Shown piece by piece: positions 3,918-60,710 of a stretch of DNA of 64,000 nucleotides. The stretch lies in NCBI GenBank assembly GCA_001643675.2, contig LSRY02000001.1, positions 2,480,001 through 2,544,000 of the forward strand. Reading direction: 5' to 3'. The notes under the pieces are model-generated. The model did not search any database, was not told the origin of the DNA, and was given only the letters and a program-made list of their open reading frames with translations. This DNA comes from Monocercomonoides exilis PA203. Taxonomy: Eukaryota; Protista; Preaxostyla. How positions within the stretch are numbered: the stretch's first letter is position 1; each line of letters starts with the position of its first letter. Position numbers and translations under genes: made by a program.

Positions 3918-4439
3918 CTCTTTTTCCTCTTCCTCTTTTTCTCCATCTTCTTTTTCTTAAGCTGCTTCTTCATCTTTGTATTCCTTCTTCTTTGCAATTA
4001 TCTTCATTTGATGCTTTTTGAATTTACAGAGCCAGCAGACAAACATCATTATTTTGTTTTTGAAGAGAAAGGCAACGAAACTGTCAAAAGTTTGCAAATG
4101 AACTGAGGATAACAATCTTCATTGGCAAATTAATGCGAATTGCAGATATTATTTGTTTTTGGGATTTTGTATTCCTTTCAAAGTCAACTTATCAAGGATG
4201 ATATTTTTGCCAACTGACAACATCTTTTTAAGTGTCTTCATCTTCTTCAGAAAAGTTATTTGGTTGATTATTCGTCTCTCAATAATTTCTTTCATCTTCT
4301 TCTTCGCATTCTTCAATTTCTTCAACATCTTCTTATTTCCCACTAACTGTACCATCTTCATCTTCACTGTTATCTTCTTCTTCAGCTCCTTCTCCAATTT
4401 TTCCAATGTTTTTTCACTCACTTGGCATTCGATCAAACC

Positions 4440-6520: not shown

Positions 6521-7098
6521 ATAAGAAAAAGAAGAAAAAGAAGAAAAAGAAGAAGTTGAAAAGAAATGCTAGTCAGTGAACTGTTCCGTTACAAAAAGTG
6601 CACGTATGCAGCTATTTCTATTTTGTGCAATGAAATTGTTCTGAACATTTAATTATCTTCGTCACTTTTTTTATCCAAATAAATATCGCAGCGCATGTGC
6701 TTTCTTCAATTATTACACAATTATAATAATGAAGGAACTATTCAACAAATGAATTAATTTTTTAATTTTGTGTAAAAAGCTTTTTTTGAATGTATTAATT
6801 GAAAATTCCATCAACATATAAAAAACCAAAATATTTGTTGTAATAACATTTTTTCAACAAAAAATACAATGCCAAATATTCCACATAGAAATTTTAAATT
6901 ACGAAAAAAATAACTTTTGTGATATTTTTCATTAATTTCAACATCATTCAGAAAACGCCAACTTCAATTGAAATTCATCTGGTTTATTTGTATTGAGATA
7001 ACATTTTTGAAAATTTTTAAGGAAAAAAAAAATTAGCTGATTAATTTTTAAGTAATATAAACATTGATCAGAAAATCGATTGAAGAGCGATTTACTGA

Positions 7099-33967: not shown

Positions 33968-35410
33968 CTACACATTCACAAAACAATCATCCACTTTAAT
34001 TGGCGCTTTATCATATCTTTCACAAAGAATAGAAATAACTCCAATAAAACTTGCAACGATATCTTCGAATCCTTCTTCTTCCATCTTTTCAAATATCTCC
34101 ATTTTCGTTGCCTTTCTTTTCGCTTCGTCATTTTCAAAAACCTCTTTTTTTTTCATTCTTTTTGAAATAATCAAAAAGAAATGAAAAAAATTCAATATTT
34201 CTTCATTCAGCAAAGTTGATTGCTTCATTTCCTCCAAAAATATATCAATGGCACCTTTCTTCACAAAAGTATCAATTTCCATATTTCTCTTTCCCGCTCC
34301 TTTTATTAATGAATAAATACACATCTCGCTGATATCTCGGTAATTATCCTTTGATGCCAGACACACTCGAATGATGCTCTCTAATAGCCCAACAAGTTCT
34401 TCATTCCACAATTCGCACAAAGAAAAGACTTCACAAATTGCACTGGTCCATCCCTCAATAATAAGCAATTCTTTCGCTTCTTTTCCTCTTTCCTTTTCTT
34501 CTTTACTCTTCCAATCAAAACATTTCAAATGCTTTTCTAGTTCCACACTTGCCTCGTTAATAAAATGTAGCTCATTCACAATATCATCTTCCAAACTTCT
34601 GTCTTTGCCAAATCTTCTTATCAAAAACTGCCAAGCAGACTGATAGGCAAGATGTGTCAGGTTGTAATGTTCCTGATAATTTAGGATAATCTCTTTGATT
34701 TCATTCAAATACAGTTCTTGTTCAATTTTCTATAAAATTCGGAAATAATCAAAAATGTCAAAAAGGAAAAAGAAGTGTTCAAACAATAAATCTTAAGTTA
34801 CTTAAAGCCAATAAAGCCATTTCTACTTCTTTTTGAGTCTCCTCGCCTTCCTCTTTCTTCGAGGCAACTTTCATTAGACAAGAAACACAAATTGGTATAA
34901 GCTCCTCAGAATGCAGGTTGCGAAGCAAAAGATAGCATTCGCAAAGGTTAGCAAGCAGATCTTCATTTTTCACATCTTTCTTCAAATTTTCACAGATTAT
35001 CATCTTTTCAAATCTTTTGTTCAACAAAGATATTCTAAATTCATATGTCCACGCTTTTTTCAATGTTTTGCAATATCCCATTTGCTTCAATAACTTAATT
35101 GCATTTTTCATCGTTAGTTTCTTTTCGTCAATCATTTTATCTATTTTGTTGAATAGATCTGCTTTAAAAACCGATTCAAATTCTTCTTTATTCATTTTTT
35201 CCAAAAGTTTATCCATTTCTTGAATTTTCTGCATTTGTTCATCTTCTCTGCAACCTTCCAGTTTACAATACAATTCTGCAAACGAGTTTCAAAATACAAA
35301 TAATTTGCCAAAATTGTTTAATCCAAATAAAATGGCAAACTTGAAAACTTCTTGGTTCTGGCTGTAATCAGAAACTCATTTTCAGATATATCATCATTTG
35401 ACAAGCTCAT
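33968..35410 (-). CDS. Expanded-family helical protein, copy 4, apparently intact, 3 exons
   Basis: Exon 1 from ATG 35410 (MSLSNDDISENEFLITARTKKFS) splices to KLYCKLEGCREDEQ, and then via a GTTTGA..TAG intron to KIEQELYLNEIKEIILNYQEHYNLTHLAYQSAWQFLI. It ends CFVNV-TAG. Confidence 0.87.
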
Positions 35411-42635: not shown

Positions 42636-45600
42636 ATGGCGGAAGCTGTGAGCGTTTCATTCCTTGAGAAGTTTGTGCTGGCGAAGGACGAAAAGGAGCG
42701 GGATGCGGCTCTGGAGGCTCTACCAGCGAATTCGACGGAGCGTCTGTATTATGCGATTTTGCGAGAACAACTGAAAAGTCCTTTGAGTGCCACGGCAGAA
42801 GAAGAACAGCTGATGGAAAAGCTGGTCAAAAAGCTGGGGAAAAGCAATACAGCGGTGGTGCAGCTGCGTCTGAGACGGGAACTGACGTCATTTGGGCAGA
42901 TGGACAAAGCGGGGCAGAAAGAAGTGCTGGAGCATCTGCGGGATGACATTTTGCATGAGGACTTCGCAAGCGTGCAACGGCGTGTAGGGGTGCGGGACGA
43001 GCCCCGGGAGGAGGCGGTGCTGCCGAGTGTGCTGGATGAGGACGAAGTTGACTTTTCAAAAGTGCTGAAGGAAGCGGCCACACATCGGCAGATTCTCAAC
43101 GAACTCACACCGGAGGGGATGCTGAAAGTTGACGGGAAAGGGCTGGAGAAGCGCGATCTGCAGCACTTCATCAACAACGTGCCGTCGTGTTCGTATCCTG
43201 GGATTGTGGAGCTGATAATGCTGTATCTTTCAAAGCCCGACACGCACCTGTCGGACTTGTCGGTCGAGCTGACGATGGACCAGCTGCAACAGCTGGGAGA
43301 AGAAAAGGCGGAGTTGCGAAGCAATGAACGGTGGGTGGAGATGATAGTGATGCGGATGGCGCCAGGGGCAGATGTGGTGTGGGAAACAGACAAAGCAGCG
43401 CAGGATGAATACTTTGAGCGGATATGGCACATGGGGTGCGAATTGAGCGGTGCAGCACTTTGGATGGGTGCTTCGCTGATGGAGGCGTGTGTGGTGCATG
43501 ATTGGCTGAGAGGGGAGCCGAACTTGGAGAGGTTTTTGAGGCTTCTGAAGTGTCCGAGAAGGGATGTGGGGATATGCATAAGGCAGGAGAGGACGAGCAA
43601 CGGGGGAAATTATGAGTGCCGGGTGGATGTGGGATGGCTGGGGAGAGTGGGGATGGGGAAGGCGGAATTGGAGTGGATGGAGCGAAATGGGAGCACAGAA
43701 CTGATCCGGAAGCTGGTGATTCATTTCATTGCGGAAGGGGTGGATGAAGAGAGGTTCGAAAAGTTTATTGAAGAGTCCGAATTGCGGAGGTTGGCGACGG
43801 AGGCGAAGCTGACGAGCGGGGAGATGGATGTGAGCAAAGTGGGAAGGAAGGATGCGGATGAGTATTTTGTTCGGCGGCTGACAGAAAAGACAGAGCTTAC
43901 GTTTGCAGACGACAACGAGACGAGCTTTGGGTTTGGGAGGGGAAAGGAAGAGGTGCCTGTGGTGAAAGTTGTGGTGAAGAATATCCGGGAGGTGCGTTTG
44001 CAGGTGTTTGAGGTGAACACGGAGGCATACTACTCGCTGATGCATCGAGAGGTGGATGCGGGAATGGAAGTGGATGGGCTGGTGGCGAACTATGAGCGTA
44101 TGCTCGATTATTCGGGGTATGCTCCTGTGATCCGGCACACGGAGCGGATTGAGCTGCCATCGCTTGTGTTGGAGAGAAAAGAGGAGAAAGGTGAAGAGGA
44201 AGAGGAAGAGGAGGAAGAGGAGGAGGAAGTTGAGCGGGGCGCAGGAGAGCGAGTGCAGAAGAGAGGAGTGTTTGTGGTTGTTCTGTCAGGGGATGGGTTG
44301 ACGAGCCGTGCACTGATCCGAAAGGGGAGTCTGCGGATGATGTGGCGGTGCATTGCAGATGGGCAGGCGGTGACAGTGCTGGACGAGCTGAACATGCCCT
44401 TGCCGAGAAGCCGGGCAGCGGTGTGGGTGGACGGGCGGAGATACAGCGCGAGCACAACTCCGAAGAGGCACCCTGCGCTGGAGCCGTGCGAGATTCTGGT
44501 GCCGTATGCGACAGGGGGCGGGGCAGGGATGAAGCAGGCGATAGTGGAAGACTTGGCAGATGAGTTCTGTGTGCTTGTGGAGGGGTTTGAGCACAAAGCA
44601 GAGGAGTATGAGTTTGGGTGTGGGATCTACATTGACCGGGAGGAGCTTGTGCGGCATGGGAATGCGCACATTGTGCTTCGGCCGCAGCTGCTGTGCTGTG
44701 GAGTTGCAGCGTCGGTGGGGATGGTGCGCGGGGTGTGTGTGAAGGTGACATCGAGGACGGTGGAAGGGATAGAGGTGACGCGGCAGTATGCGGGGGTGCG
44801 GTTTGCGGATGGGGAGGTGGGGTGTGTGGAGTATACAGTTCCTGAGAATGTTGCAAAGTTGCAGGTGGAGGTGAGCGGGGCGGTGACGGTGCACTCAGAT
44901 TTGGGTCGGACAGTGCCAGTTCGGAGCGAGAAGACGTTTTGTGTGAACACGATTGACAAAACGAGGGAGATTGTGGCAGCAGCGCTGGTACGAAGAACAG
45001 AAGAGAAGAATGCGAAAAATGGGAAGAACGGGAAGACTTGTTATGTTCTGCGTGTGTTTGGGAAAGGCGGAGAGAGAATCAAACATCACGCAGTCACGTT
45101 CAAGTTCTTCTGGCGGTGCGTGAGCAGCTGGGGGAGCACATGCAAAGAGGGAGTCAGACTGATGACAGACAAGAAAGGGGAGATTGAACTGGGCAGTTTG
45201 AGAGATGTGAGTGGGTTTGAGATACGGATGGGGTCAGGGGATGGGGCAGGGGAGACGAGGCAGATGTTTGGGCTGGATGGGCATGGCGTTGAGCCGATGC
45301 CGATGCATGTGGAGAACAGGAGCGAGAGGGCAGTGGGGTATGCGGGGCAAGAGCTGGAGGTGACGCTGGAAATGGGGTGGGATGAAGGAGAAGAGGAAAG
45401 GAACGAAGAGGAAAAGAATGAAGAGGAAGAAAAGGAGGGAGCGAAGAATGAGAAGAAGGGGATTGAGAAGAGACTGGTTTCGCTGACACAAATGATCGGG
45501 ACAGAACGGATTGTACCGTTGCGTGATGTGAGCGAGAAGATGGTGGTGAAGGAAGGGAAGGCGATTCTGTTGGCTGATCTGCCTTGTGGGGAATATGAGC

Positions 45601-48600
45601 TGTTTGAGTGGGCGACGGGGCTGCGGACGACTATTTCGCTGATTGAGCCGCGGAAGATGGCTGAAAACAACGAGAAAGATGGAGTGAAGGAGGAAAACAT
45701 GAACGAAAAATGGAAAGAAGAAGAAGAAGAAAGCGATTGTGGGGTGAGGCAGGACAACACATCGCTTCTGTGTGGTGTGCGGAGGATCGGGCGACGAGGA
45801 GGTGATGCAGCAGTGGCGATTGTGGGGGTTCGGCAGATGAGAGAAGGAGCGGAAGCCGGGAACGTGGAGGTGATTCTGAGCAACTGCACAGCGATGACGC
45901 GTGTGCATGTGTTTGGGAGTGTGTTTGCGGGGGCGTTTGATGCAGAGACGCAGCTGACGGGGCTGGCAGAGGGGAGGCAGGCAGAGGTGCAGATAGCAAA
46001 GGTGGCGGGGTCATTCTACACATCTGACAAGAGGCTGGGCACAGAGCAAGAATACATCCAGCGAAGACAGACGGCAGCAGCGCGTCTGGGGAACACGCTG
46101 GATGCGCCGTCTGTGCTGATGCACGGGGTTGTGACGCAGGAGACTTGGAGGAAGGAGGCGAGCGCATTTGCAGGGGATGCGATCTGCGGAGGAGCAGCAA
46201 GCGGAGAGATGATGGCAGACATGATGGCGAGGAAGAAGAAGAAGATGATGATGAACGGGGCGATGGAAGGGGGAATGGGAGGAGTGCGTAACTGGAGGAG
46301 GAGCCTGGCAGACTGGAAGAACATCGACTTTTTGGGGGAGACGACGACAGTTGTGCTGAATGAAGCACCAGGGGAAGGGAAGAGGAGGCGTGTGGTTATC
46401 CCGATGGAGGTGATTGCAGGGAAGGGGCAGAGCACTGTGACAGTGGTGGCGACAGACGATGAGCATGTGGTGGCGAAGGTGGTGGGGGTGGATCTGAGTC
46501 TGTGCAGCGGGAGAAGGAAAACGGAAGGAAGAGAAGGAGGAGAAGGAGAAGGAGAAGGACGATTGGGGGAAATGAGGCTGATGAATGTGTTTGACCCGAA
46601 GAAGCATGTTTTGCAGAAGATGCACTCGGCGCTGATTCTGCCAGAAAAAGTGCTGAGAAGCAGATGTTGGGAAGTCAGTGATGAGAAGGATGAAGAAAAG
46701 AAGGAAGAAAAGAAGGAAGAAAAGAAGGAAGAAAAGAAGGAGAAGGAGGAGAAAATAAAATCAAGATGTGAATGTGAATGCGCCAGTTCAAATGGGAAGA
46801 AGACAGGAGGAGTGTCATTGAAGAAGGCATATCTTTCGAAATGTGTTGCGACGCGGAAGATAAAAGATCTGTCGACATCTACATATGAAAGCTACAGTTG
46901 CTTTGGGGGAATTCTTCATCTGCTGAAGTGTGTGATGAAGGCGAAGGCGAAGAAGAATGAGGGAGATGAGGCAAAAGTGAGGGCATTTGACGCATGGTGT
47001 AATGCGTTTGAGGAGCTGTACAAGTTGGTTGATGATGAGGATGAGGATGAAGATGAAGAGAAAGAGAAAGAAAAAGAAGAAGAGAAGAAGAAGAAATTCC
47101 GAGAGCTTTGTGATCGATACAGCGAATTTGCTTGTGAGGAGACGAATGTTCTGCTGTTCAAAAAGGCGCCAAAATTCTTTGCGAAAGCGGTTCGTCCGAG
47201 TTTGGCGAGCAAAAAGGAGAAGACGGTGGTTGACCACTATCTGCTTGGCACGGAAGATGTGGGGCTGTTTGAGGAATATGCAGAGCCAGCTTTGTTTGCG
47301 AGGCTGAATGCAGTGGAGCAAGTGTTTGTGCTGGCGAGGCTGGTGGAGCTGGGGCAGAAGGCGAAGAAAAGAGAAGAAGGAAGAGAAGAAGGAGAAGAAT
47401 TGCTGGAGAGGAGTTTGAGGAGGTGTGTGGCGTTGGTGGAGAAAGTGGAAGGGCAGCTGAGGTCGCAGCTGAGAGACAAGAAAGAAGAGGAGAAGGTGTT
47501 TGAGACAGCGCTTCGATCAGGATTGGATGTTGGGGGGTTGATTGAGGCAGAGGAAGAAGAAGAAGAAGAAAGAGGAAGAAAAAGCAGTGTGAAAGGAGCA
47601 TCGGCGCGAGCATTCAACGAAGGAGGGGATTTGGGGAAGATGGAAGTGCATGTGAGGACGATGCAAGGGAAGATAATTCGAGTAAGTGTGACGAAGGAGA
47701 CAACAGTGGCGGAGCTGAAGGAGCTTGTGCAGAAGAAAGAAGGGATTCTGCCTGACATGCAGAAGATTATCTTCAACGACGTGCAGCTGAGTGACACGCG
47801 CACAATGAGCGGGTGCTTCATCCGGAACAACGACGAGCTGAAGCTGATGCCGCGTATGTTGGGGGGTGCAACGGATGTTAAAGGGCAGATGGGGCAGATG
47901 GAGCAGATGGGGCAGATGGGGAAGATAGAGAAAGGAGCGAGGCCTGGAGCGAGAATGGCAATGCCGATGGTTGGGATGGCAAGGGCAGGAGCAGGGGCAA
48001 GTGCAGGGGCAGGGATGAGGCCGAGAATGCTGATGCAGTCGAATGCGGTGCAGAGGATGGGCACTGCTGGTGCGATGCCACGTCGGGCAAATGGCTTTTG
48101 TGGCTCTTTCTCAAAGGCAATTCCTTCAAATCCTCAGATGGCGATACCTTTTGGAATGCAGATGGAGGCACCAATGGCAGCACCGATGGAGATGAAGATG
48201 GCAATGCCGATGGCACCGATGAAGATGAAGATGGCAGCAGAGAATGTGCATTATGGCTACACTTCTGCTTTTAGTGGATCTTGTGGCTTTTCTGCAGATG
48301 GTGGTGCTTGTGCTGAGGAAGAAGAAGAGAAAATGCCAGTTGCAAAGTTCCAGCAGGTGGAGAACACGAAAGAATACCGAGAGAACCAATATCATCGTGT
48401 GGCGTCATCTCATTCCGCGCTGATTGAGTGGAACCATTTCTTCCTGGACTATGCGCGATATCTGTTTGGGTGTGTCGGGGAGGGGGTGGGCAGGGATGCG
48501 CGCGAGTGTGGGAGGGCTGTTCCTTTTGTGTCAGCGAATGTGATTGAATGCACCGATTCGTTTGCGTCAGCGGCGTTTGCAGCTGCGCTGACAGATGTTT

Positions 48601-51119
48601 GTGTGCATCCTGTTTGTGTGGAGAAGGCGATTGAGATGAGGGGAGGAAGGGCGAGTGCGTCTATTTGGAGCAAGGACACAGCTGCAGTGCTGTTTGTGAA
48701 GGAGATGGAGGAATTTGAGGGAGGGAAGGAAGGAATTGAAGAAGGAGAAGGAGAAGGAGAAGGAGAAGGAGAAAATGAAAGGGAAAGGGAAAAAGAGAGG
48801 CAAGCGAGGAAACAAGGGCTGGAGTTGAATGGGTTGGGGAAACGAGTGGAGATGAAGCAGGTGGTTGTGCAGGAGTTTGTGTATGATGTGAGCGAAGAGT
48901 GGGAGGTGAATGAGGAAGGGCGGAAGGCGAGGAAGTATGTGGAGTGGGAGAAGATGCGAGCGGGGCTGGTGTATGTGTGCGATGTGGTGCTAACGAACAC
49001 GACGGCAGCGCAGAGGTCGGTGGAGGTGCTGATGCAGGTGCCAGGAGGGTCGATTGTGCTGCAAAGGGGCAGTGCGACGAGGACACAGAGCGTTGTTCTG
49101 GGGGCGTATGGGACGCAGACGGTGTCGTATGCGTTCTATTTCCCGGAGAGTGGGGAGTTTGTGCACTATCCGGCGCAGGTGGCGATGCGGGGGCGGTATG
49201 TGTGCTGCAGCCGAGAGGGAGGGCACCGGGTGAGGGTGGAAGCAGAAGGGAGGGCGCTGGAGGCAGAGCGGAGAGACTGGGGGTATGTGTCGCAGGAGGC
49301 GGAGAAAGAAGTGTTGCTGGAGTTTCTGGAGAAAGAGAACCTGCACCGAGCAGATGTGGACCTGTCGATGATATTGTGGCGGTTGGAGGAGAAGAGTGTG
49401 TTTGAGAGTGTGATTGAGGTGCTGCTGCGGCGCGGGGTGTATGACGGGCGGGTGTATTCGTATTCACTGCGGCACTTTGGCCCAGCAGCAGCTGTGCAGA
49501 GGCACTTGTGCGGAGGAAGCGCGTCGAGTGTGATTGCATCGCGGCTGGCGGTGTGTGCGACGGTTTTGTCGCCTGTGTGCGTGAAGAGCCCTGTGGGGAA
49601 GGGAGAGGTGCGTGTGCTGGAGTATCGTCCGCTGATCAATCCGCGTTGTTTTGTGTTTGGGGAAGAGAAAGAGCACATTGCGAATGCGCAACTGGCGGGG
49701 CAGTACAGAAAGTATTTGATGCATTTGGCGCACGGGGCAGCAGCTGGGTATGTCTCGTCAGCTCTTTTGGAGAGGAATGAAGAGGATGAAGAATCAGATG
49801 AGGGAGAATACAACGAATACTCTCAAAGGATGCCTTCTATGAGTGGGTCATGTTTGATCGGCGACGGGGAAAGACTTGTGCTGACATACTATCTTTTGCT
49901 GCAGGACAGGCTGGACGAGGCGAGGGAGCTGTTTGGGACGATTGGCAAGGGATGTTCTTCAGCCAGCGGATCAGATGGAGGAAAGAGAGAGAATGAAATA
50001 GAAATGGAGATGCAGCTGCAACATGATTATATGAGTGCGTATTTGGACATGACGGATCCAGAAAGTGCTCTTCCAAAGCCGAAAAGCGGAGAAAACGGAG
50101 AAATGAAAATGGAAGCACCGAAATTGGCAGTTGCACGGAGAGTGGCAGAGAAGCATAGGAATTGCTCGATTCCACGATGGAAGGCGATGTTTGACCATTT
50201 GAAGGAGCAGATTGGAGAAGTGGACAGAATGTTTGGGGCAGGGCAGAGAGAGAGGGAAAAAGAGAGAAGAGAAGAAGAGGAAGAAGAGGAAAAAGAAAAA
50301 GAAGTGAAAGGAGGAGGAAAGAGAAAGAAGGATGTTTTTGTTGAGAATGAGGCTGAGCGAGAAAATAGAAGGCAGCGGGAGTTGGATTCATCGATGGCGG
50401 TTGAAGGGACTTTTGAGATGGCAATTGATGAGAAGGGGAAGAGAATTGTGGTGAAGCAGGAGAAGGGGAAGGAGAAGAGAGGGAAGATGAAGTTCTACAA
50501 GGTGGATGTTGAAAGCCTGTTCAGCGTGAAGCCGTTTATGAAAGGAAAAGATGCAGCAAAGGCATTTTCGATTGTGAAGCCAACGAAACAAATCGAATTC
50601 TCTTTTGAAGAAGCTACTTCCTCCTCCTCCTCCTCTTCTTCTTCTTCCTCATCTTCTTCGACGTCTTTTTCTTCTTCAATTCATTTGATGCCGAGTGTAA
50701 TTGTTCCTGTGCCAGAAGAGCTGCAAACGCAGAATGTGTTTGTTGAGGCAGAATACGAAGGGAAGCGCTGTTCAGAGGCACTGTTCAGGAGTGGGATGAG
50801 TGTGGAGGTGTTTGAGGAGACAGGGCGGCTGGTGGCGAAAGAGGAAGCGACACATCTGCCGGCTGCAGGGGTGTATGTGAAGGTGTATGCGAAGGTGTGT
50901 GGGAGAGGTTGTAGAGAAGAAGAAGGGGTGTTTGTGAAGGATGGGTTCACAGACTGGCGGGGCTGTTTTGACTATGCGTCAGTGAACAAGAGCACGAATA
51001 GCAGTTTGGGTGCTTGTGGACGAGTGGGCTGTGAAATCACCCACCGTTTTTCGATTCTTATTGCGAGCGACGATTTGGGGTGTGTTGTGAAGGAGGTTGA
51101 TGCGCCAGCTGAAAATTAG
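42636..51119 (+). CDS. Giant intronless 2827-aa protein with an internal ubiquitin-like domain and possible macroglobulin-like beta-sandwich modules; no signal peptide
   Basis: Single uninterrupted ORF from ATG 42636 to TAG 51119, markedly GC- and G-rich versus its flanks. UBL at aa 1669-1744. C-terminal motif YVKVYAK..FVKDGFTDWRGCFDYAS..RFSILIASDDLGCVVKEVDAP. Confidence 0.92.
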   Translation: MAEAVSVSFLEKFVLAKDEKERDAALEALPANSTERLYYAILREQLKSPLSATAEEEQLMEKLVKKLGKSNTAVVQLRLRRELTSFGQMDKAGQKEVLEHLRDDILHEDFASVQRRVGVRDEPREEAVLPSVLDEDEVDFSKVLKEAATHRQILNELTPEGMLKVDGKGLEKRDLQHFINNVPSCSYPGIVELIMLYLSKPDTHLSDLSVELTMDQLQQLGEEKAELRSNERWVEMIVMRMAPGADVVWETDKAAQDEYFERIWHMGCELSGAALWMGASLMEACVVHDWLRGEPNLERFLRLLKCPRRDVGICIRQERTSNGGNYECRVDVGWLGRVGMGKAELEWMERNGSTELIRKLVIHFIAEGVDEERFEKFIEESELRRLATEAKLTSGEMDVSKVGRKDADEYFVRRLTEKTELTFADDNETSFGFGRGKEEVPVVKVVVKNIREVRLQVFEVNTEAYYSLMHREVDAGMEVDGLVANYERMLDYSGYAPVIRHTERIELPSLVLERKEEKGEEEEEEEEEEEEVERGAGERVQKRGVFVVVLSGDGLTSRALIRKGSLRMMWRCIADGQAVTVLDELNMPLPRSRAAVWVDGRRYSASTTPKRHPALEPCEILVPYATGGGAGMKQAIVEDLADEFCVLVEGFEHKAEEYEFGCGIYIDREELVRHGNAHIVLRPQLLCCGVAASVGMVRGVCVKVTSRTVEGIEVTRQYAGVRFADGEVGCVEYTVPENVAKLQVEVSGAVTVHSDLGRTVPVRSEKTFCVNTIDKTREIVAAALVRRTEEKNAKNGKNGKTCYVLRVFGKGGERIKHHAVTFKFFWRCVSSWGSTCKEGVRLMTDKKGEIELGSLRDVSGFEIRMGSGDGAGETRQMFGLDGHGVEPMPMHVENRSERAVGYAGQELEVTLEMGWDEGEEERNEEEKNEEEEKEGAKNEKKGIEKRLVSLTQMIGTERIVPLRDVSEKMVVKEGKAILLADLPCGEYELFEWATGLRTTISLIEPRKMAENNEKDGVKEENMNEKWKEEEEESDCGVRQDNTSLLCGVRRIGRRGGDAAVAIVGVRQMREGAEAGNVEVILSNCTAMTRVHVFGSVFAGAFDAETQLTGLAEGRQAEVQIAKVAGSFYTSDKRLGTEQEYIQRRQTAAARLGNTLDAPSVLMHGVVTQETWRKEASAFAGDAICGGAASGEMMADMMARKKKKMMMNGAMEGGMGGVRNWRRSLADWKNIDFLGETTTVVLNEAPGEGKRRRVVIPMEVIAGKGQSTVTVVATDDEHVVAKVVGVDLSLCSGRRKTEGREGGEGEGEGRLGEMRLMNVFDPKKHVLQKMHSALILPEKVLRSRCWEVSDEKDEEKKEEKKEEKKEEKKEKEEKIKSRCECECASSNGKKTGGVSLKKAYLSKCVATRKIKDLSTSTYESYSCFGGILHLLKCVMKAKAKKNEGDEAKVRAFDAWCNAFEELYKLVDDEDEDEDEEKEKEKEEEKKKKFRELCDRYSEFACEETNVLLFKKAPKFFAKAVRPSLASKKEKTVVDHYLLGTEDVGLFEEYAEPALFARLNAVEQVFVLARLVELGQKAKKREEGREEGEELLERSLRRCVALVEKVEGQLRSQLRDKKEEEKVFETALRSGLDVGGLIEAEEEEEEERGRKSSVKGASARAFNEGGDLGKMEVHVRTMQGKIIRVSVTKETTVAELKELVQKKEGILPDMQKIIFNDVQLSDTRTMSGCFIRNNDELKLMPRMLGGATDVKGQMGQMEQMGQMGKIEKGARPGARMAMPMVGMARAGAGASAGAGMRPRMLMQSNAVQRMGTAGAMPRRANGFCGSFSKAIPSNPQMAIPFGMQMEAPMAAPMEMKMAMPMAPMKMKMAAENVHYGYTSAFSGSCGFSADGGACAEEEEEKMPVAKFQQVENTKEYRENQYHRVASSHSALIEWNHFFLDYARYLFGCVGEGVGRDARECGRAVPFVSANVIECTDSFASAAFAAALTDVCVHPVCVEKAIEMRGGRASASIWSKDTAAVLFVKEMEEFEGGKEGIEEGEGEGEGEGENEREREKERQARKQGLELNGLGKRVEMKQVVVQEFVYDVSEEWEVNEEGRKARKYVEWEKMRAGLVYVCDVVLTNTTAAQRSVEVLMQVPGGSIVLQRGSATRTQSVVLGAYGTQTVSYAFYFPESGEFVHYPAQVAMRGRYVCCSREGGHRVRVEAEGRALEAERRDWGYVSQEAEKEVLLEFLEKENLHRADVDLSMILWRLEEKSVFESVIEVLLRRGVYDGRVYSYSLRHFGPAAAVQRHLCGGSASSVIASRLAVCATVLSPVCVKSPVGKGEVRVLEYRPLINPRCFVFGEEKEHIANAQLAGQYRKYLMHLAHGAAAGYVSSALLERNEEDEESDEGEYNEYSQRMPSMSGSCLIGDGERLVLTYYLLLQDRLDEARELFGTIGKGCSSASGSDGGKRENEIEMEMQLQHDYMSAYLDMTDPESALPKPKSGENGEMKMEAPKLAVARRVAEKHRNCSIPRWKAMFDHLKEQIGEVDRMFGAGQREREKERREEEEEEEKEKEVKGGGKRKKDVFVENEAERENRRQRELDSSMAVEGTFEMAIDEKGKRIVVKQEKGKEKRGKMKFYKVDVESLFSVKPFMKGKDAAKAFSIVKPTKQIEFSFEEATSSSSSSSSSSSSSSTSFSSSIHLMPSVIVPVPEELQTQNVFVEAEYEGKRCSEALFRSGMSVEVFEETGRLVAKEEATHLPAAGVYVKVYAKVCGRGCREEEGVFVKDGFTDWRGCFDYASVNKSTNSSLGACGRVGCEITHRFSILIASDDLGCVVKEVDAPAEN
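47640..47867 (+). other. 76-aa ubiquitin-like domain ending in Gly-Gly, embedded in the 2827-aa protein
   Basis: MEVHVRTMQGKIIRVSVTKETTVAELKELVQKKEGILPDMQKIIFNDVQLSDTRTMSGCFIRNNDELKLMPRMLGG aligns without gaps to ubiquitin; 31 of 76 identities by hand count. Confidence 0.95.
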
Positions 51120-52922: not shown

Positions 52923-55900
52923 TCACTTCTCAGTCTGCAAAGTTCCTGTGATATCTGAAGAATTCACACTCGTCATGTGTTCCCCATCTTCTGTTGTCTC
53001 CTCCAGATCAATCGCATCTGACATCGTCAGAATTGCTGCTCCTGCAGGAAACCGCTGGATGAACTCTCGCTTCAGCCCTGCCAAGCTCAGTCTGACTTCT
53101 GGCTGGGAAGACAGGCAAGCTCGGATGATTTCAAAGAAATTCGACTCCTTCACAGCAGACATGTTCGGTCGTTCGTGATTCACTATCTTCTGCCCTGCCA
53201 CCTCACCCTCATACTCATCAAATGGGATCTCCAGTGTCAGACACTCCCACAGCATCATCCCAATCGAGAATGCCACTGACTCCTTTGTCGCTCCCATCTT
53301 CTTGTTCATCTGCAGCTCTGGTGCCTTCCACCTCAGGCACTCTTTTCTTTCTTCATCTTCATCATCCTCAAACGCTGATGATGGAGGTGGCGACTTGGTG
53401 AATCTCTCGCTCATCACTGAAACATCAGAGGAAGATGTGACCATGGTGGAGGCTGAAGAGACAGATGAAGTGTCAGAGTCTGACAAGCAGTCGGAGTGGA
53501 GAGCAATGCAGATGACCATGTGCTCTGAGAACAGCACAATGTGGGGACTGAGATTGGCCAAAGAGGAAAGCTCATTTTCCATTTCGTCAAAGGAGTGGAG
53601 CGCAAGATTGGCCACCCAGAACAGGATCTGAGCAGCTGTTTGCTCCCTCTCCTTCAAACTCCCAATTGCCATCTCCTTTGTCTTATTCCTCCCATGAAGC
53701 AGCATGAACAGAGAATCCCTCAGATCCACGATCAGCTTCTCATGAGGGGATGAGCAGGCCATTGCATCCACCAGATTCGACATCGATGATGTGGTGGGGC
53801 ACAGATCCTCTCCGCGAACAAATGTGGATTCTGTATCTGAAGTATCTGTGGATGAAATGGATGAAATGGATGGTGATGGTGTTCTTTTCCTTGCCTCTTC
53901 TTCTTCAACCTTTTCCAATGCCCATTCTGGGATCTTGTCTGAATCTTTCCCCAAGATGTATTCTGTTGATCCACTCTCAGAAAGAAGGTGCTCTGACGAC
54001 TCGGAATGTCCCAAACTTTTCTCATACACCCTCTTCTTCATCCTCTCTTCATTCTTTTTTTCTGCCTCCCTTTCTGCTCTCCTCCACTGCTCCTCGGGTG
54101 ACATCTCCATCGTAACCATCTCAATCAGCTTCGGATCCTTCTTCACCGTATCATTCACTATTTCTTCTAATTCTTCTGTTCGCCTCTCAGATTTCCTCCA
54201 TCGAACTGCAATAATTATTGATACAATCAGCACAATTAAAAGAACAATAGCCATAATTATCACAATCAATAACCAATAAGATTTTCCTTCTTTTCCTCCT
54301 TCAACCACTTTATCATTTCCGGTTTTTGATTCGGTTTTGTTCTTCAGTATCTGTGGAGAAGTGAAAGCCAATTGCTTCCCAAACAGAATCATCACTGACA
54401 CTTCTGTTTCGTCTGCAATCGTTGATATATTTTCTGATGGAATTCTTCCAATCACTTCTGTTTCTGATTCAAAACTGTCTTCCTCAAACCGATATGTCTC
54501 AACCAACTCCACATCCCCTGTTTTGAATATCAATCTGAATGACAAGTCACAAGGAAGAAGAAGTGATCCCTTGAATTTCACAACAACATTGCTGCCATTC
54601 TCATTCATTGAAACATCTTTTAGTATGGGAATGAAAAATGGAGATGACCTTTCTCCTGCTATCCCTCTCAAATCACATCCATCATTCAAAATCCAAAGAG
54701 AAGAATTTGGCATCAATCCATCTCCGCCTTTCAAGCTGGAAATGGTCAGTGAAGCAGAATCTGAACAAATGATGTTTCGACGAAGAGAGGGATATTTTTC
54801 AATAAATGGATTGTTATTCATAAACTCTCCTTTCTCAATCGTCACATCTCCAGCAGATACTGATAATCCACCCTGTGAAGCATTCATTATTGTCACATAT
54901 TTCATCATCAATGAAGAATTGGCAGAATGGACAAGAGATCCATTCCATTTGCATATTTCTTCAAAATCGCTGTTTCTCTCATTTTCATTTTCATTTGAAA
55001 GAATTCCTTCAAATTGATACATTTGCATCGAAACATCTTTTGCATTGTTCATCTCCACAATGCTTCCTTTGCTTGACAGAGAATTGCAATCTGAGCAAGA
55101 GCAATTGAAAAGATTAATTTGAGCAGATGATGAAGAAGCAGTGAAAACAGAAGCTCCTCTTGAATTCCTCAAACAGTTGTTGAACGAGGAGATTCCAATA
55201 GAAACTGTTCCTGATGACAAATCGTTTATCGCAATGACACAACCTTCAGATAGCTCCACTTCTTCGGTCACCATCCAATTAAATACAACACTTCCACAAT
55301 CACCAATCTCAAATATATTTGTTGTTGATTCAATCTGTTCCAGTTTAAAATTTGTAAAATTTATCTCATCACCATTTAACAAAAATGAAGGCTTCTTGAA
55401 TGAAAGCATTGATATTGAGCAGTTGTCAACATGAAGAATTCCATTTTCGATGCTCAGCAACGATGAGTTGAGAACAACAGATTCAATGTTTTCTGATTGG
55501 CCAACCGAAGAGAAATCAACAAATGAAAGAGAAAGCTGGCCATTTGCTTCATGAATGATTGAACTGCCTGAATATGAAAATAACTGACCAAAGTTGAATT
55601 TCACACTTTCGACCCGAACTTTCTCTGATGTTGTGATCAGATTTCCCTCATTGGTTATCGTTGAGTTCAAATGCACCAAAGCAGCTGAGGGAGATTGCAA
55701 TGAGCGGATGGTCACATTAAGAACGTCACACTTCCCAACAATTTCTGTTTGCTCCAAGATCAGCAGCTGTGAGTACAGAGATGGAATGATGTGCTGCACT
55801 CCAAAGCTCAATGAGTGGCAAGGAGTATTGAACTCTCCACATTGCTTGTTATCTTCCTCATTCTCTGCAACTGATGACACAAATATCGTCTCGCTCTGGT

Positions 55901-58900
55901 ATTTCATAACCCTCAACAGAAGATCCTCTTCCCCCACAAACGAGTCTGTTGTGCATCCCCATACTGCCTTGTCCTTCACAAACGGAGCTCTAAAATCCAG
56001 CAAGAATTGCTCATCAACAATTTGATTTTCGATTGAGTGGCATCGAATATACACATCTCTCCCCCTCAACGCAGTGTTGTCTCTGAATGTGATACTTGAC
56101 AAAACAAAATTCAGAGGCTGCTCAGCTGTCGAGGTGCATTCCAGAAACAGCCACCCACCTCTTCCTGCAGTCGAGCAGAAACACTCTGAAATTGTGCAAA
56201 ATGAGCAATCAAAACTTCCTCCCTCATTCAACTCACAAAACATCCCTCCTCCCTTTCCACACTTCAACCCTCCACATCTCTTCATCGTTGTGTTCCGAAT
56301 CACTATTTTCAATGGCTCATCATTCTCATTTCTAATGATGGGAATGTTCTCTGTTGTGTTTTGGGTGACTTCTTCAAACAAACTCCACTCAATAACGATG
56401 TTTTGTTCTCCTTCATTGCTCCCTCTCTTCTCTCCAGCTGATCCCTTTGATATCCTCAACCCACTTGCTCCTTCAAGCTCAATATTCTTCATCGTCAGGT
56501 TTTTCGCATTCAGCACCGTTGTTGACAACACAGAAATAACATCCTGCGAAAAGCTCAACAATTGCATCGTCACCAATTCCAGCACAACAGTTCCTCCATC
56601 TGCCTTGATCAGCCCATAATCTGTCAATTCTTCTCTCTCATCTCCCTTTTTGCTGAATGAGCAGTCTTTCAGCGTCAACAGTCCTTCGCTTGATCCTATA
56701 TGCATCAAAACATTCACTCCACTTGCAAATGAAGATGGAATCACAAACTGTATCAATTCGAAATTGGTGATGCCACAAATCTTCATTGCTGCTCCTTCTG
56801 CTCCCTCAAGCGATGAGACACATTCCAATGAGCACATGCTGCTCACATCCGATTTCACTGATATTCCACTCACATCAACACTCTTCTGAAGATAACCTTT
56901 TCCAATGATGTTGACATTCCTTTCATTTCCTTCTCGCAGTCTTGTCAACGAATGATCCATCGACAGACACGGATAATCTGAGAATCCACACACACACACA
57001 TCACAACCTTCGCTCCCAATAAATATCTCTGACCCAATCGCTCTCCAGAAATTGACCAGCGGAATGGCATTCGTTGTGTCACTCCCATCAAAGCCTTTCA
57101 TGGAATCAAACGAAATATCATCCAGATTCTCTGGCACAAATGGAAGAGAGGTGTTTGTGATGCTCTTTGTCAAGTTTGGCGATTCAACAAACAGGTTATT
57201 TCCATATCTTGCAGCATTAGGTTTGTCTGCCTCAAAAACAGGGGATGAGATCACAAATGAAGAATATTCATTAATCAGCTTCAGTGCCATCCCTCCCCCA
57301 AACCCAATCTTCCGTTCTCCTGCTGGTGCTGTGCATCCTGTGAATGTGCATGAAATAATATTCATTTGAATGCCCCCTTTCAACTGGGCATCAATGGCCC
57401 CTCCTCTACTTTCATCATCCAGCACAGAACATCCATCAAATGAACATTCTTCAATATTTATTTGTGTGTTTGTATTTTCATCATCGCTGTTGTCAATGCT
57501 CACACACCCTCCATTTCCAGCTGCTCTTTCGATTTTTGTGAAATTGCTGTTCGTCATGTTCAACCACAGAGTGCTTATCAACTCTGCATTTGTGCTGCTT
57601 CCTCTCAATGAGATCAGCGGATTTCTCCTCAAATCAATTGATGAAGCTGAGAATTTGTCGATTATCAGGATCCCTGACTCAACTGACAAGAACAGAATTG
57701 TCAATTCTGATGATGGATCTTGAAGAGAAAGAGAACATTGAGACAGAGTTATTGACGATGAAGATGACGAAATGAAAGTGGAGTGAAGAGGAAGAGAAGA
57801 TGGAAGAGAGAAGATGAGTCTTGATAATTCTGTTTCAACATTTGCTGAAATCATAGATGAATTGGATGTTTCACTTGAATCAGAGACTGTCCAACCACTC
57901 TGTTCATAATTTCCTCGGATTTCATGTTTCTGTCCAACAAAATCCAATTCATCACTCATCAAAATCATTCCATTCACAACAACTTTCTTTGTTTCTGTTT
58001 GTCTTGTGAGGGAGTGCTTCATTGTCAAGCAAGGGAATTGGACAATTCCACAGTGTGAGTGATTAGATGCCTCAGAATTGCTCACATATATTTCTTCTGG
58101 TGTGGGGAGGAGATAGATGCACAGAGGAATGGCCACACTGTTGTTTCCATTGTCACATCCTCTCACCTTCTCAACAGAATCCAAAGAGGCTTCCACACAT
58201 GTGATGTTTTCTGATTTTGCTGTTTCTTCCAGATTGGGTGAAATAACAAAAATATCTCTTCCCCATTTGGCTGTGTTTGTGCCAAACGAAGAGGATATCA
58301 GGAAATTGGGATTTTCATTCAACAATCGAAGAAGAATTCCTCCCCCAAATCCATATGTTGCAGAGCAATAGCACCCATCAAAAGATCCGCCTTTCACTTT
58401 CACCTCATTTCCATTCCCAACACACAGCATCATCGATCCCCCATCAGCCGATGTTCTGCTTCCACATCCTTCAAAAGTGCTCGAATTCACATCAATGTTG
58501 GCCTTGTCATTCGAAAACGACATCACTGCTGCTCCGCTTGTTGCTCTCTCAATCCCATCAAAGGCACACTCTGAAAGCGTCAATGAAATCTCATTTGTTG
58601 AAGAAAGCGAAAACAATGAAGTTGTGGAGATCGTCTTTGCCCAGTTCACATGTTCCATCTGAAACACCCCGTTCTGGACATTGATCAGTTCTGTCGAAAA
58701 TGCTGTTTCTGTTGATTGTCCGCTCCCAAAAGATATGTTCAGTCTGCTCACATACATCTCTCCTGCTCCACTTATCTCAAACAGCCTTGACCCACGGTTA
58801 TTCGGATGAGCCGAGTCATGCACAAGAATAAGGTCACTGGCAGTCAATGCGCCTGTTGAGACTGAAAATAGAGGCAGCCCAGATGCTTCAAATTCTGTTT

Positions 58901-60710
58901 GGATTGCTGTGCTCATATTGCTTTGGCCATAAATAGTAAAAGCGTTGACCCCACAATCAAAACTATTTGTTTCGATTATCGTTCCTGAAAATATTTCGAT
59001 ATTGGGAACCAAATCTGGAATGAGTTGTGTGAGGCAACGGCTGATGGTGCTGCATGGATTAGATTTATCCAGCCCACATGCATACGTGTCGTTGCCTTTT
59101 GGTTGTGAATCAGTTGATGAGACAAATCTCACATTTCCAAAATCATTGCGAAGCCATTCACTGTGATCAGCGTTTGTATTATAATTAGTACAAACTCGGT
59201 TTGTTGCTTTTCTGGTTGAATAGCAGGTGGAATCAATGTTATTTGACGATGATATTTGCAGAGCAATATCATTTCCCACTTTTCCACACGTGTTGTTGTG
59301 GAAAAAGCAGAAAAATAATAATGTTCCGTAATTATATGCATTTATTTCAATTGCAATAGCACCCCCCCAACACATTGCATAACAATGACAAAATAAACAA
59401 TTTGAAAAAATAATTTGATCTGTACACTTCCAATTCAGAATGGCGCCTCCTGTGCCATCTCGTGAAGAATTGCATCGGCAGTTATCATAAAAGGAATTAA
59501 CAACGCACACTTTCTGTCTTTCTGTTTTTGTTAGTAAAAAATATATAGCTCCTCCATCATCACCAGAAGAGCAATTATAAAATAAACAATCGTCGACCAC
59601 TGGTTGGGTGTTAACATTATCGAACATTATTCCTCCACCTCCAAAGTCTGATGTTGCTGCAGCTGAACATTGATTAAATGTCGAATGAAGTACAATGCAT
59701 TCAGCTATTTTTTGAGCATATATTCCCCCACCATTTGTCGAGGAAGCATTGCATCTTGTGAATGAAGAATTCTCAACTGTGAGTATTGCACTTGCATTGT
59801 CGTGCACATAAAGAGCGCCTCCTTGTGGGGATGTGCAATCAGTCCATTCACACAATGAAAATGATTGGCTTTCTGTTGAATTAATTTGTCCTTTTTTCTC
59901 AAGAGCATTCATTTCTCTTTTCCCGAAGTTTATTGTTGTGTTTTTGCAGATGAATTCTTGTGAAGAATATGACCCACTCGATATCCCTCCTTCAAAGACA
60001 TTCACACACGAATAAATGAGGCAGTTCTCCATCAAACTTCGAAAGCATGAATGTTCCACAAAATGATCGCTATTCTTATCAGATTTCACAGACATGTTCC
60101 TGAAGGCACAGTTAGAAATCTCTTCACTTTTGCTCTTTCCTGATAGCAGGAAATAGTCTGAAGCTGAAACAGCCAGGTCTGCAATGACAGAATTCCTCAA
60201 AATAACAGAATTGGAATCATCAGAAGAAAATATGAGACTGGATGGGTTAAGACTCTCTTGGGGGATCAAAGTCATGTTTGTGAGGCAGATTGACCCGATA
60301 TTCAAATGAAATGGAGATTTCGATTTTTGGTGGGAAACACATGAATCCAACACCACATTCGATTTATCTGTTATCAGAATAAATGGGGAGGAAGAATATT
60401 CGACTGCCACATTTTTCAGTCCAACTGAAGAATTGGAAAATCGAAAAAAAGAATAAATAGCTGTGCATGTTCCTGCCTTCCATCTGTTCATTCCTGATGC
60501 TTTTCCATGTTCTGACAAATAATTATTATTGTCATTTGTGGGAAATTGTGCATCATTAGAGTTGACTTGACCGAAATAAATACAGTAATTTAAAGAAATT
60601 CCATTTGAAATAATACCTTGGTTTTCAAATGTGGATGTTCCACAGATGACTTGAGATTTAAATGTCTCTGCTAGAGTCAGACATGCTAAAAGGAACAAAT
60701 GCACCCTCAT
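52923..60710 (-). CDS. Receptor-like protein, 2595 aa: signal peptide, very large Cys/Ser-rich beta-helix (pectin-lyase-like) ectodomain, one TM helix, degenerate kinase C-lobe
   Basis: N-terminus MRVHLFLLACLTLA; repeated GGA[IL]Y strands and four C-G-x4/5-P-C-x-[ST] motifs; TM YWLLIVIIMAIVLLIVLIVSIIIAV. Kinase-like RWKAPE, VAFSIGMMLWECLTLEIPF and ACLSSQPEVRLS are present; VAIK, HRD and DFG are absent. Confidence 0.9.
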   Translation of the reverse strand: MRVHLFLLACLTLAETFKSQVICGTSTFENQGIISNGISLNYCIYFGQVNSNDAQFPTNDNNNYLSEHGKASGMNRWKAGTCTAIYSFFRFSNSSVGLKNVAVEYSSSPFILITDKSNVVLDSCVSHQKSKSPFHLNIGSICLTNMTLIPQESLNPSSLIFSSDDSNSVILRNSVIADLAVSASDYFLLSGKSKSEEISNCAFRNMSVKSDKNSDHFVEHSCFRSLMENCLIYSCVNVFEGGISSGSYSSQEFICKNTTINFGKREMNALEKKGQINSTESQSFSLCEWTDCTSPQGGALYVHDNASAILTVENSSFTRCNASSTNGGGIYAQKIAECIVLHSTFNQCSAAATSDFGGGGIMFDNVNTQPVVDDCLFYNCSSGDDGGAIYFLLTKTERQKVCVVNSFYDNCRCNSSRDGTGGAILNWKCTDQIIFSNCLFCHCYAMCWGGAIAIEINAYNYGTLLFFCFFHNNTCGKVGNDIALQISSSNNIDSTCYSTRKATNRVCTNYNTNADHSEWLRNDFGNVRFVSSTDSQPKGNDTYACGLDKSNPCSTISRCLTQLIPDLVPNIEIFSGTIIETNSFDCGVNAFTIYGQSNMSTAIQTEFEASGLPLFSVSTGALTASDLILVHDSAHPNNRGSRLFEISGAGEMYVSRLNISFGSGQSTETAFSTELINVQNGVFQMEHVNWAKTISTTSLFSLSSTNEISLTLSECAFDGIERATSGAAVMSFSNDKANIDVNSSTFEGCGSRTSADGGSMMLCVGNGNEVKVKGGSFDGCYCSATYGFGGGILLRLLNENPNFLISSSFGTNTAKWGRDIFVISPNLEETAKSENITCVEASLDSVEKVRGCDNGNNSVAIPLCIYLLPTPEEIYVSNSEASNHSHCGIVQFPCLTMKHSLTRQTETKKVVVNGMILMSDELDFVGQKHEIRGNYEQSGWTVSDSSETSNSSMISANVETELSRLIFSLPSSLPLHSTFISSSSSSITLSQCSLSLQDPSSELTILFLSVESGILIIDKFSASSIDLRRNPLISLRGSSTNAELISTLWLNMTNSNFTKIERAAGNGGCVSIDNSDDENTNTQINIEECSFDGCSVLDDESRGGAIDAQLKGGIQMNIISCTFTGCTAPAGERKIGFGGGMALKLINEYSSFVISSPVFEADKPNAARYGNNLFVESPNLTKSITNTSLPFVPENLDDISFDSMKGFDGSDTTNAIPLVNFWRAIGSEIFIGSEGCDVCVCGFSDYPCLSMDHSLTRLREGNERNVNIIGKGYLQKSVDVSGISVKSDVSSMCSLECVSSLEGAEGAAMKICGITNFELIQFVIPSSFASGVNVLMHIGSSEGLLTLKDCSFSKKGDEREELTDYGLIKADGGTVVLELVTMQLLSFSQDVISVLSTTVLNAKNLTMKNIELEGASGLRISKGSAGEKRGSNEGEQNIVIEWSLFEEVTQNTTENIPIIRNENDEPLKIVIRNTTMKRCGGLKCGKGGGMFCELNEGGSFDCSFCTISECFCSTAGRGGWLFLECTSTAEQPLNFVLSSITFRDNTALRGRDVYIRCHSIENQIVDEQFLLDFRAPFVKDKAVWGCTTDSFVGEEDLLLRVMKYQSETIFVSSVAENEEDNKQCGEFNTPCHSLSFGVQHIIPSLYSQLLILEQTEIVGKCDVLNVTIRSLQSPSAALVHLNSTITNEGNLITTSEKVRVESVKFNFGQLFSYSGSSIIHEANGQLSLSFVDFSSVGQSENIESVVLNSSLLSIENGILHVDNCSISMLSFKKPSFLLNGDEINFTNFKLEQIESTTNIFEIGDCGSVVFNWMVTEEVELSEGCVIAINDLSSGTVSIGISSFNNCLRNSRGASVFTASSSSAQINLFNCSCSDCNSLSSKGSIVEMNNAKDVSMQMYQFEGILSNENENERNSDFEEICKWNGSLVHSANSSLMMKYVTIMNASQGGLSVSAGDVTIEKGEFMNNNPFIEKYPSLRRNIICSDSASLTISSLKGGDGLMPNSSLWILNDGCDLRGIAGERSSPFFIPILKDVSMNENGSNVVVKFKGSLLLPCDLSFRLIFKTGDVELVETYRFEEDSFESETEVIGRIPSENISTIADETEVSVMILFGKQLAFTSPQILKNKTESKTGNDKVVEGGKEGKSYWLLIVIIMAIVLLIVLIVSIIIAVRWRKSERRTEELEEIVNDTVKKDPKLIEMVTMEMSPEEQWRRAEREAEKKNEERMKKRVYEKSLGHSESSEHLLSESGSTEYILGKDSDKIPEWALEKVEEEEARKRTPSPSISSISSTDTSDTESTFVRGEDLCPTTSSMSNLVDAMACSSPHEKLIVDLRDSLFMLLHGRNKTKEMAIGSLKEREQTAAQILFWVANLALHSFDEMENELSSLANLSPHIVLFSEHMVICIALHSDCLSDSDTSSVSSASTMVTSSSDVSVMSERFTKSPPPSSAFEDDEDEERKECLRWKAPELQMNKKMGATKESVAFSIGMMLWECLTLEIPFDEYEGEVAGQKIVNHERPNMSAVKESNFFEIIRACLSSQPEVRLSLAGLKREFIQRFPAGAAILTMSDAIDLEETTEDGEHMTSVNSSDITGTLQTEK

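Follow-up and report, generated by a model that had tools for sequence, protein, structure and literature searches.

A ubiquitin-derived domain in the disordered linker of a giant protein of Monocercomonoides exilis with a predicted macroglobulin-like fold

The window analysed here is a stretch of 64,000 nucleotides (nt) from Monocercomonoides exilis PA203 (assembly GCA_001643675.2, contig LSRY02000001.1, positions 2,480,001 to 2,544,000 of the forward strand); a published Oxford Nanopore Technologies assembly of this strain comprises 101 contigs and ~82.3 Mb (PMC8767320). The ORF list and translation place a single uninterrupted, intron-less open reading frame (ORF) of 2827 amino acids (aa) at 42636..51119 on the forward strand, and all features of this gene are given on that strand below. 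Its GC content is 46-56%, compared with ~30% in the surrounding DNA. A Pfam scan of the giant protein matched nothing outside aa 1669-1744 (47640..47867), which form a beta-grasp domain of 76 aa derived from ubiquitin. A sequence-only reading of the window had noticed this ubiquitin-like (UBL) domain and had proposed that it might serve as a bait for deubiquitinases (DUBs) or as a cleavage switch.

The segment of aa 1669-1744 is a genuine full-length ubiquitin derivative ending in Gly-Gly. It matched Pfam PF00240 with E 4.8e-15 in the whole protein and E 1.5e-17 as the isolated 76 aa. Its scores of 55-64 bits (63.6 bits over profile positions 1-70/72) lie far above the cut-off of 25.4, therefore the match is far beyond chance. 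HMMER aligned residues 1-76 with ubiquitin 1-76 without a gap and with 31 identities to the canonical sequence, exactly as had been counted from the sequence; compared with the ubiquitin of M. exilis itself, 30 of the 76 residues are identical. A residue table bore out each residue that had been named: K11, K27, K33, I44, R72, G75 and G76 are kept, and positions 48, 63 and 74 are V, N and L, respectively. As in cleavable linear ubiquitin fusions, the Gly-Gly pair (aa 1743-1744, codons at 47862..47867) is followed by a residue other than proline, here Ala, which makes the junction a candidate scissile site according to the translation and the residue table. The tail reads MPRMLGG (LMPRMLGG) instead of LRLRGG, and the changes on the surface and in the tail comprise L8M, H68K, V70M, L71P, L73M and R74L, so that the LRLRGG tail and the Ile44 and Ile36 patches read by DUBs and by E1 are not preserved as such. 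No Hint or Vint domain was matched in the window protein by the Pfam scan, and the residue after Gly-Gly is Ala.

Two AlphaFold2 (AF2) models were built on deep alignments, one of the N-terminal half of the bacterial homolog P0004 (predicted local distance difference test, pLDDT, 86.6) and one of aa 1480-2560 of the window protein (pLDDT 72.7). The models predict an order of TPR-like helices, a beta-sandwich array, a helical domain, the linker, a further macroglobulin (MG)-like sandwich and more helices. The N-terminal helical region (aa 1 to ~440, 42636..43955) is TPR-like by fold and has no signal peptide, as judged from the P0004 model and a comparison of N-termini. It is followed by the predicted macroglobulin-like beta-sandwich array (aa ~440-1250, 43953..46385), which was assigned from the homolog model, Foldseek and VIA-align. 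All homologs conserve the helical block that lies directly upstream of the linker (aa 1480-1646, 47073..47573; model residues 1-167, pLDDT ~90). A short acidic/basic disordered spacer (aa 1647-1668, 47574..47639) separates this helical domain from the UBL, with pLDDT below 50 at aa 1648-1665 (model residues 169-186). The UBL itself shows beta-beta-alpha-beta elements with pLDDT 50-85. Behind it come the Ala and a disordered linker of ~155 aa rich in M/A/P/G/Q (aa 1745-1899, 47868..48332), with pLDDT ~30 over aa 1738-1899, and the flanking domains are at ~90. These models and the translation agree with the sequence-only reading, which had set the UBL in a disordered region flanked by two large ordered ones and had pointed to the M/A/P/G-rich stretch after it.

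The window protein shares 22-28% identity, collinear over its full length, with hypothetical proteins of ~2100 aa from Planctomycetota and Verrucomicrobiota. When the C-terminal third was used as query, an exhaustive HMMER search returned 1530 cluster representatives at E <=1e-3 and 506 at E <=1e-30. Further eukaryotic members are M. exilis P0016 and P0020, three proteins of Blattamonas nauphoetae and one of Paratrimastix pyriformis; the database names "RNA helicase RhlE" and "actin-binding protein" given to eukaryotic members found no domain support in Pfam and NCBIfam scans. Judged from these sequences, the host family is a large unnamed group found mostly in Planctomycetota and Verrucomicrobiota, plus Preaxostyla. 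Maximum-likelihood phylogeny grouped the Preaxostyla proteins in a single clade amid bacterial sequences, with a support of 90 in the Shimodaira-Hasegawa-like approximate likelihood ratio test (SH-aLRT), and the oxymonads are grouped with a support of 100. The family was likely passed between bacteria and Preaxostyla by transfer. Many bacterial members carry a signal peptide at the N-terminus, and the Preaxostyla members have none. The gene neighbourhoods of three bacterial family loci had no neighbours in common and thus gave no functional hint.

The sequence-only reading had suggested asking whether the UBL sits in a hypervariable loop and whether other homologs carry different inserts there, and both turned out to be so. 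Between two conserved anchors, the linker measures 36-271 aa (median 105) in 148 homologs. Bacterial linkers are of low complexity with A/G/E/R/D/S/P, and those of all Preaxostyla members are rich in Met, Ala, Pro and Gln. Met-rich linkers were seen in P0017, P0019, P0020, P0022 and P0067, and this composition is common to all Preaxostyla members and one unassigned ENA protein. At the same linker position, three proteins of Verrucomicrobiota type (P0011, P0140 and P0125) have a small folded domain similar to STN or the Amuc_1098 N-terminal domain. Because this insert occupies the position of the M. exilis UBL, the linker is a place where small folded domains have landed repeatedly. In the majority of family members, this position holds only sequence of low complexity.

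In a set of 165 family proteins, the UBL is confined to the window protein and P0001. P0001, encoded on contig C14, is a paralog in the same genome with 65% identity to the window protein, and a third carrier was read from the genome sequence on contig C24; these are referred to as the C14 and C24 paralogs. In the tree, all three UBL proteins fall into a single clade (SH-aLRT 100) whose sister is M. exilis P0016, which has no UBL (99), and the Blattamonas proteins lie outside. Therefore, the UBL was gained once, inside the Monocercomonoides lineage. The UBLs of C14 and C24 are identical to M. exilis ubiquitin at 45/76 and 43/76 residues, respectively, and both end in LVLRLRGG followed by Gly. 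No UBL-bearing ortholog outside M. exilis was found in searches with the whole protein or with the UBL and its flanks, and none of the Blattamonas and Paratrimastix family members from the search of representatives has a UBL.

Contrary to what had been implied at first, the UBL is not unique in the genome. It recurs at at least 25 further places as copies of the window gene, and the many genomic UBL matches are explained by partial copies of this gene. At least 30 such copies are dispersed in the genome with 70-91% identity, mainly to gene nt ~2733-6614, and they have the same end and the same deletions, of nt 4110-4734 and 5531-5590 (examples are loci L003-L012, L021-L034, L039 and L040; C41:691500-701400, C26:943000-952900). 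A repeat unit at least 7.9 kb long, with 97% identity between contigs, contains two of them, and the annotation lists several as short "putative Ubiquitin family" proteins. Of 25 decayed dispersed copies, among them many with stop codons, 22 still have Gly-Gly, and at the 42% identity between the window UBL and C14 the odds that two given residues are kept by chance are ~0.18. Gly-Gly retention was rejected as an argument for function because it is so common in the decayed copies. In addition, an inverted full-length duplicate with 96% identity lies ~95 kb upstream of the window gene on the opposite strand (C1:2418877-2427378, loci L015 and L016). Its length changes keep the frame and one in-frame stop lies opposite aa 1924; with this lone stop written as X, the ratio of non-synonymous to synonymous substitution rates (dN/dS) compared with the window gene is 0.17. 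Either the duplicate is a pseudogene of very recent origin, or it reflects a residual error of the assembly. For the window gene and the C24 paralog, no full-length annotated protein was among the search results (best match 65%), and public annotation may omit or split these giant genes.

The three UBL-bearing paralogs allowed selection to be compared between the parts of the protein. The whole 8.5-kb ORF is intact, with dN/dS 0.12. The ordered domains of the window protein and the C14 paralog share 70-75% identity and show dN/dS 0.11-0.16 across paralog pairs, with the N-terminal region of the C14-C24 pair as the exception among the ordered blocks (0.28). Identity to C14 is 42% in the UBL and 45% in the disordered linker, with dN/dS of 0.22-0.38 and 0.22-0.43, respectively. 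Compared with the 96% duplicate, the UBL has 2 non-synonymous and 5 synonymous changes; with this comparison included, its dN/dS is 0.1-0.38, well below 1. All 14 of the 14 hydrophobic-core positions are identical to ubiquitin or conservatively replaced. These changes and the conservative core indicate that the fold is maintained: the beta-grasp fold of the window UBL is under purifying selection.

The surface of the domain gives a different picture. We counted residues at 19 positions through which ubiquitin contacts DUBs, E1 and ubiquitin-binding domains, namely the Ile44 and Ile36 patches, the 46-49 loop, T9, Q40, R42 and the tail 71-76, a list that agrees with the residues named in PMC10611586. 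The window UBL keeps 6/19 of them, compared with 24/57 residues elsewhere in the domain (p 0.59). The C14 UBL keeps 17/19 compared with 28/57 elsewhere (p 0.0025), and the C24 UBL keeps 16/19 (p 0.007). From these counts, the C14 and C24 UBLs are still selected to resemble ubiquitin and the window copy is not. Therefore, the ubiquitin-specific surface and tail of the window UBL have decayed to background level.

The host family resembles macroglobulins in its predicted fold. In the P0004 model, helices extend over residues 1-395 and gave TPR-type matches with Z 7-9. The solved structures closest to both halves are alpha-2-macroglobulin (A2M), complement C3/C4/C5, TEP1 and CD109. Foldseek placed C5b, A2ML1, CD109, A2M and TEP1 on top for the N-terminal half (E 2.5e-11 to 1e-8) and reached E 5.6e-5 for the C-terminal half. 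VIA-align, which is independent of Foldseek, ranked Salmonella A2M first for both, with Z 10.5 and 406 aligned residues for the N-terminal half and Z 11.3 for the other. The predicted sandwich downstream of the linker (aa 2073-2206, 48852..49253) superposed on residues 1494-1644 of Salmonella A2M with Z 11.7 and a root-mean-square deviation (rmsd) of 2.6 A over 116 aligned residues, and on residues 826-935 of C3 with Z 10.7 and rmsd 2.2 A. In the ESM Atlas, the neighbours outside the family are MG2/A2M clusters, with TM scores of only 0.21-0.26, and generic Ig arrays (titin, contactin) score about as well in Foldseek.

Sequence profiles did not follow this resemblance. Pfam MG2, A2M_BRD, A2M, TED and bMG10 gave no match in the window protein or its bacterial homologs at E up to 1, a PDB profile search returned empty, and the CxEQ thioester motif was not found in the window protein, P0001, P0004 or P0011. 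As a positive control, the motif was present as CSEQ at 2106 in P0015, a true thioester A2M with bMG10 and A2M_BRD domains and no signal peptide (locus L037, an 8.1-kb contig of Logan SRR25443674). The hhalign comparison of family alignments with P0015 gave E 0.08 and 0.8, which is not significant. Filing the host family under A2M was dropped, as neither Pfam, NCBIfam, the PDB profile search nor hhalign gave a sequence-profile link. With no A2M Pfam domain, no significant hhalign match, no CxEQ and similar scores for titin-type arrays, the family is best described as macroglobulin-like by fold and not as a member of the A2M family. The comparison with A2M drawn in the sequence-only reading thus holds for the fold but not for the thioester or for significant profile similarity. 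The models leave the relation of the linker to the A2M bait region (MG6/MG7 position) ambiguous: in multi-domain superposition, the C3/C4 mapping puts the linker before an MG7-like domain and the bacterial A2M mapping puts it between TED-like helices and an MG10-like domain, with rmsd 18-24 A in both. A second low-complexity loop, rich in Met, Gly, Ala and Lys, lies inside the MG-like array at window ~46200-46330 (aa ~1190-1230). It matches a disordered loop of a bacterial homolog (model residues 991-1042) and lies near the end of the stretch aligned to Salmonella A2M (chain residues up to 1009), and by these models it may be a better bait-like candidate than the UBL linker.

We propose that one ubiquitin coding unit was captured once within the Monocercomonoides lineage and landed in the disordered, hypervariable inter-domain linker of one branch of this giant TPR-like and macroglobulin-like family. 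In the ancestor, the usual ubiquitin enzymes probably recognised this insert, which would have given a junction cut by DUBs. The window copy has most likely become an integral UBL bead, flexibly tethered within the linker, which would act as an interaction handle or spacer and be processed poorly or not at all by general DUBs. With moderate confidence, we infer that the window UBL is such an integral tethered domain that is not efficiently cut, at what was probably a DUB-cut site in the ancestor, and that the C14 and C24 proteins are probably still cut. The cleavage-switch or bait idea is weakened for the window copy by the 6/19 contact residues and the MPRMLGG tail, and a bait or switch function of this copy is possible but not favoured. 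The same idea fits the C14 and C24 paralogs much better, because their UBLs end in LVLRLRGG-G and retain 16-17 of the 19 contact residues. Since LRLRGG and nearly the whole contact surface are kept in them, these two fusions are likely cut after Gly-Gly like any linear ubiquitin fusion.

What is known of tail recognition bears on this reading. Tail recognition places L71 and L73 in pockets and pairs R72 and R74 with glutamates (PMC10611586), and three of these four residues (L71, R72, L73 and R74) are changed in the window UBL. It is established that UBLs about as diverged as the window copy are not general DUB substrates. Under the preferred reading, the window UBL resembles the integral UBLs of Rad23, parkin and USP proteins, which are uncleaved beta-grasp domains with a diverged surface and serve as interaction modules. 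To our knowledge, integral UBLs normally have no C-terminal Gly-Gly and are rarely exactly 76 aa long without gaps; the window UBL differs from them as a recent ubiquitin derivative that still ends in Gly-Gly. Several points weigh against the preferred reading. The window copy retains I44, R72 and a Gly-Gly with a small residue (Ala) behind it, which for a dedicated protease might be the minimum requirement. Should the sister paralogs depend on maturation into two chains, the same might still hold for the window copy. Neutral evolution clearly does not describe the UBL; it is selected for something, which could be processing. In addition, the list of 19 positions was drawn from known ubiquitin complexes and, fixed though it was before counting, is still a choice.

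The strongest alternative, which we entertain only tentatively, is that the window copy too is cut after Gly-Gly by a cellular, possibly specialised DUB, yielding a 1744-aa N-terminal half with a UBL-GG end and a 1083-aa C-terminal half starting with Ala. Ubiquitin-ribosomal protein fusions, ubiquitin inserts of pestiviruses and the two-chain maturation of complement C3/C4 would be its analogues. Besides the retained GG-Ala, I44 and R72 and a tail that ends in RMLGG like that of the UBL Fubi, it draws on the predicted exposure of the UBL on disordered linkers and on the near-perfect DUB substrate kept by the sister paralogs. Precedent exists in pestivirus polyproteins, where ubiquitin inside a long ORF is a proven signal and is cut after G76 by ubiquitin C-terminal hydrolases (UCHs) of the cell unless the site is spoiled (PMC8310069). 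Divergence by itself does not prevent cleavage, as Fubi, which ends in diGly and is only 36% identical to ubiquitin, was found to be cleaved by USP16 and USP36, with the closest homolog, USP42, being ubiquitin-specific (PMC10611586). Against this alternative, 13 of the 19 contact residues are changed in the window copy, including L8, H68, V70, L71 (to Pro), L73 and R74, and the frequency of Gly-Gly in decayed copies, together with its chance odds, makes its retention uninformative in so young a lineage.

The known ubiquitin fusions share some features of the window protein and differ in others. In cytopathogenic bovine viral diarrhoea virus (BVDV) strains such as Osloss, CP1 and CP Rit, as here, a cellular ubiquitin unit was captured inside a very long ORF, with Gly-Gly intact and between two functional halves. 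The viral insert is almost unchanged ubiquitin and its cleavage by UCHs is proven (PMC8310069), whereas the window gene is cellular, its insert is old (30/76), the surface is decayed and cleavage would be hypothetical. In ubiquitin and UBL fusion precursors (polyubiquitin, Ub-eL40, Ub-eS31 and Fubi-eS30), a beta-grasp domain likewise ends in Gly-Gly directly before another polypeptide, and M. exilis also has ordinary ubiquitin fusion forms. Those units are N-terminal or in tandem before small proteins; in contrast, the window UBL is internal (residue 1669/2827), has long disordered flanks and belongs to a non-ubiquitin giant.

A more specific form of the processing idea, possible but somewhat more doubtful, is that the UBL was built in as a cleavage site for host DUBs that would convert a cytosolic macroglobulin-like protein from a single-chain to a two-chain form, parallel to the maturation of C3/C4. 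The N-terminal half would then carry an activatable UBL-GG end, and the diverged window copy would be served by a dedicated protease.

It is unlikely that the UBL is a passenger in decay, that is, an insert without a role in the window copy, tolerated as a harmless folded bead in a gene from a recently amplified and partly degenerating repeat family. The UBL does evolve as fast as the linker (42% and 45% identity to C14, compared with 70-75% in the ordered parts), the 96% duplicate is interrupted by an in-frame stop, decayed partial copies number at least 30, and an identical full-length annotated protein was not among the search results. However, a passenger would not be expected to show a dN/dS well below 1 (0.1-0.38) with every hydrophobic-core change conservative, nor to sit in an intact 8.5-kb ORF with dN/dS 0.12.

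Very improbable is a DUB trap, in which the UBL would lure host or foreign deubiquitinases and the cut would trigger an A2M-like conformational capture, or in which the N-terminal half would be a giant conjugatable modifier: A2M, complement and TEP are the best fold matches of both halves, and in P0015 ubiquitin arose at a bait-like place elsewhere, but the host family has neither the thioester nor A2M Pfam domains nor a significant hhalign match, its linker maps to two alternative A2M positions so that bait equivalence is not established, most members have only low-complexity sequence there, and a bait should keep the surface read by DUBs, which the window copy has lost.

The A2M superfamily and Hint-flanking ubiquitin were compared with the window protein in the same way. 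A2M, C3-C5, TEP and CD109, including bacterial A2M, are likewise giants with arrays of MG-type sandwiches and a protease-accessible disordered segment between the halves, and many bacterial members of the host family have signal peptides. Unlike them, the host family has no profile similarity or thioester, an extra TPR-like N-terminus and another domain order after the array, and its eukaryotic members have no signal peptide. In BUBL-type genes of ciliates, ubiquitin-like domains flank a Hint/intein-like domain. P0015 and P0247 are of this kind: they hold ubiquitin units within a large ORF where a cut is made, and those of P0015 come after the A2M bait-region domain. The difference is that they have their own Hint autoprocessing domain straight after Gly-Gly, whereas the window protein has no Hint. 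The P0015 insert consists of ubiquitin-GG, a Hint/Vint domain (Cys ... His-Asn, then Ser) and a second ubiquitin, between the bait-region and A2M domains. P0015 is unrelated to the window protein, and in it ubiquitin is truly at the bait position. A search based on P0015 for long proteins with embedded ubiquitin yielded mostly giant poly-UBL proteins and one sibling, P0247.

Ubiquitin units that keep Gly-Gly inside cellular, non-ubiquitin giant ORFs are rare, and the proven case of internal processing is viral. One genome here holds a natural series, with two paralogs that have a near-intact reading surface, one that has decayed (the window copy) and close relatives without the insert. This series allows testing which features of ubiquitin DUBs need in an internal fusion and what becomes of a site that is no longer needed. 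The window copy is its least informative member and the sister paralogs are the better test objects. The host family is of separate interest, as it has ~1500 cluster representatives and no name, combines a predicted A2M-like fold with the lack of a thioester and has likely been transferred between bacteria and Preaxostyla.

Elsewhere in the window, the neighbouring giant ORF at 52923-60710 on the reverse strand encodes 2595 aa with a fragment of a kinase domain at the C-terminus, and that at 22148-25999, also on the reverse strand, encodes 1283 aa and contains an SH3 and a short-chain dehydrogenase domain. The short ORFs at 27240-27917 and 33968-34708 match DUF1759, which is typical of retroelement gag-like proteins.

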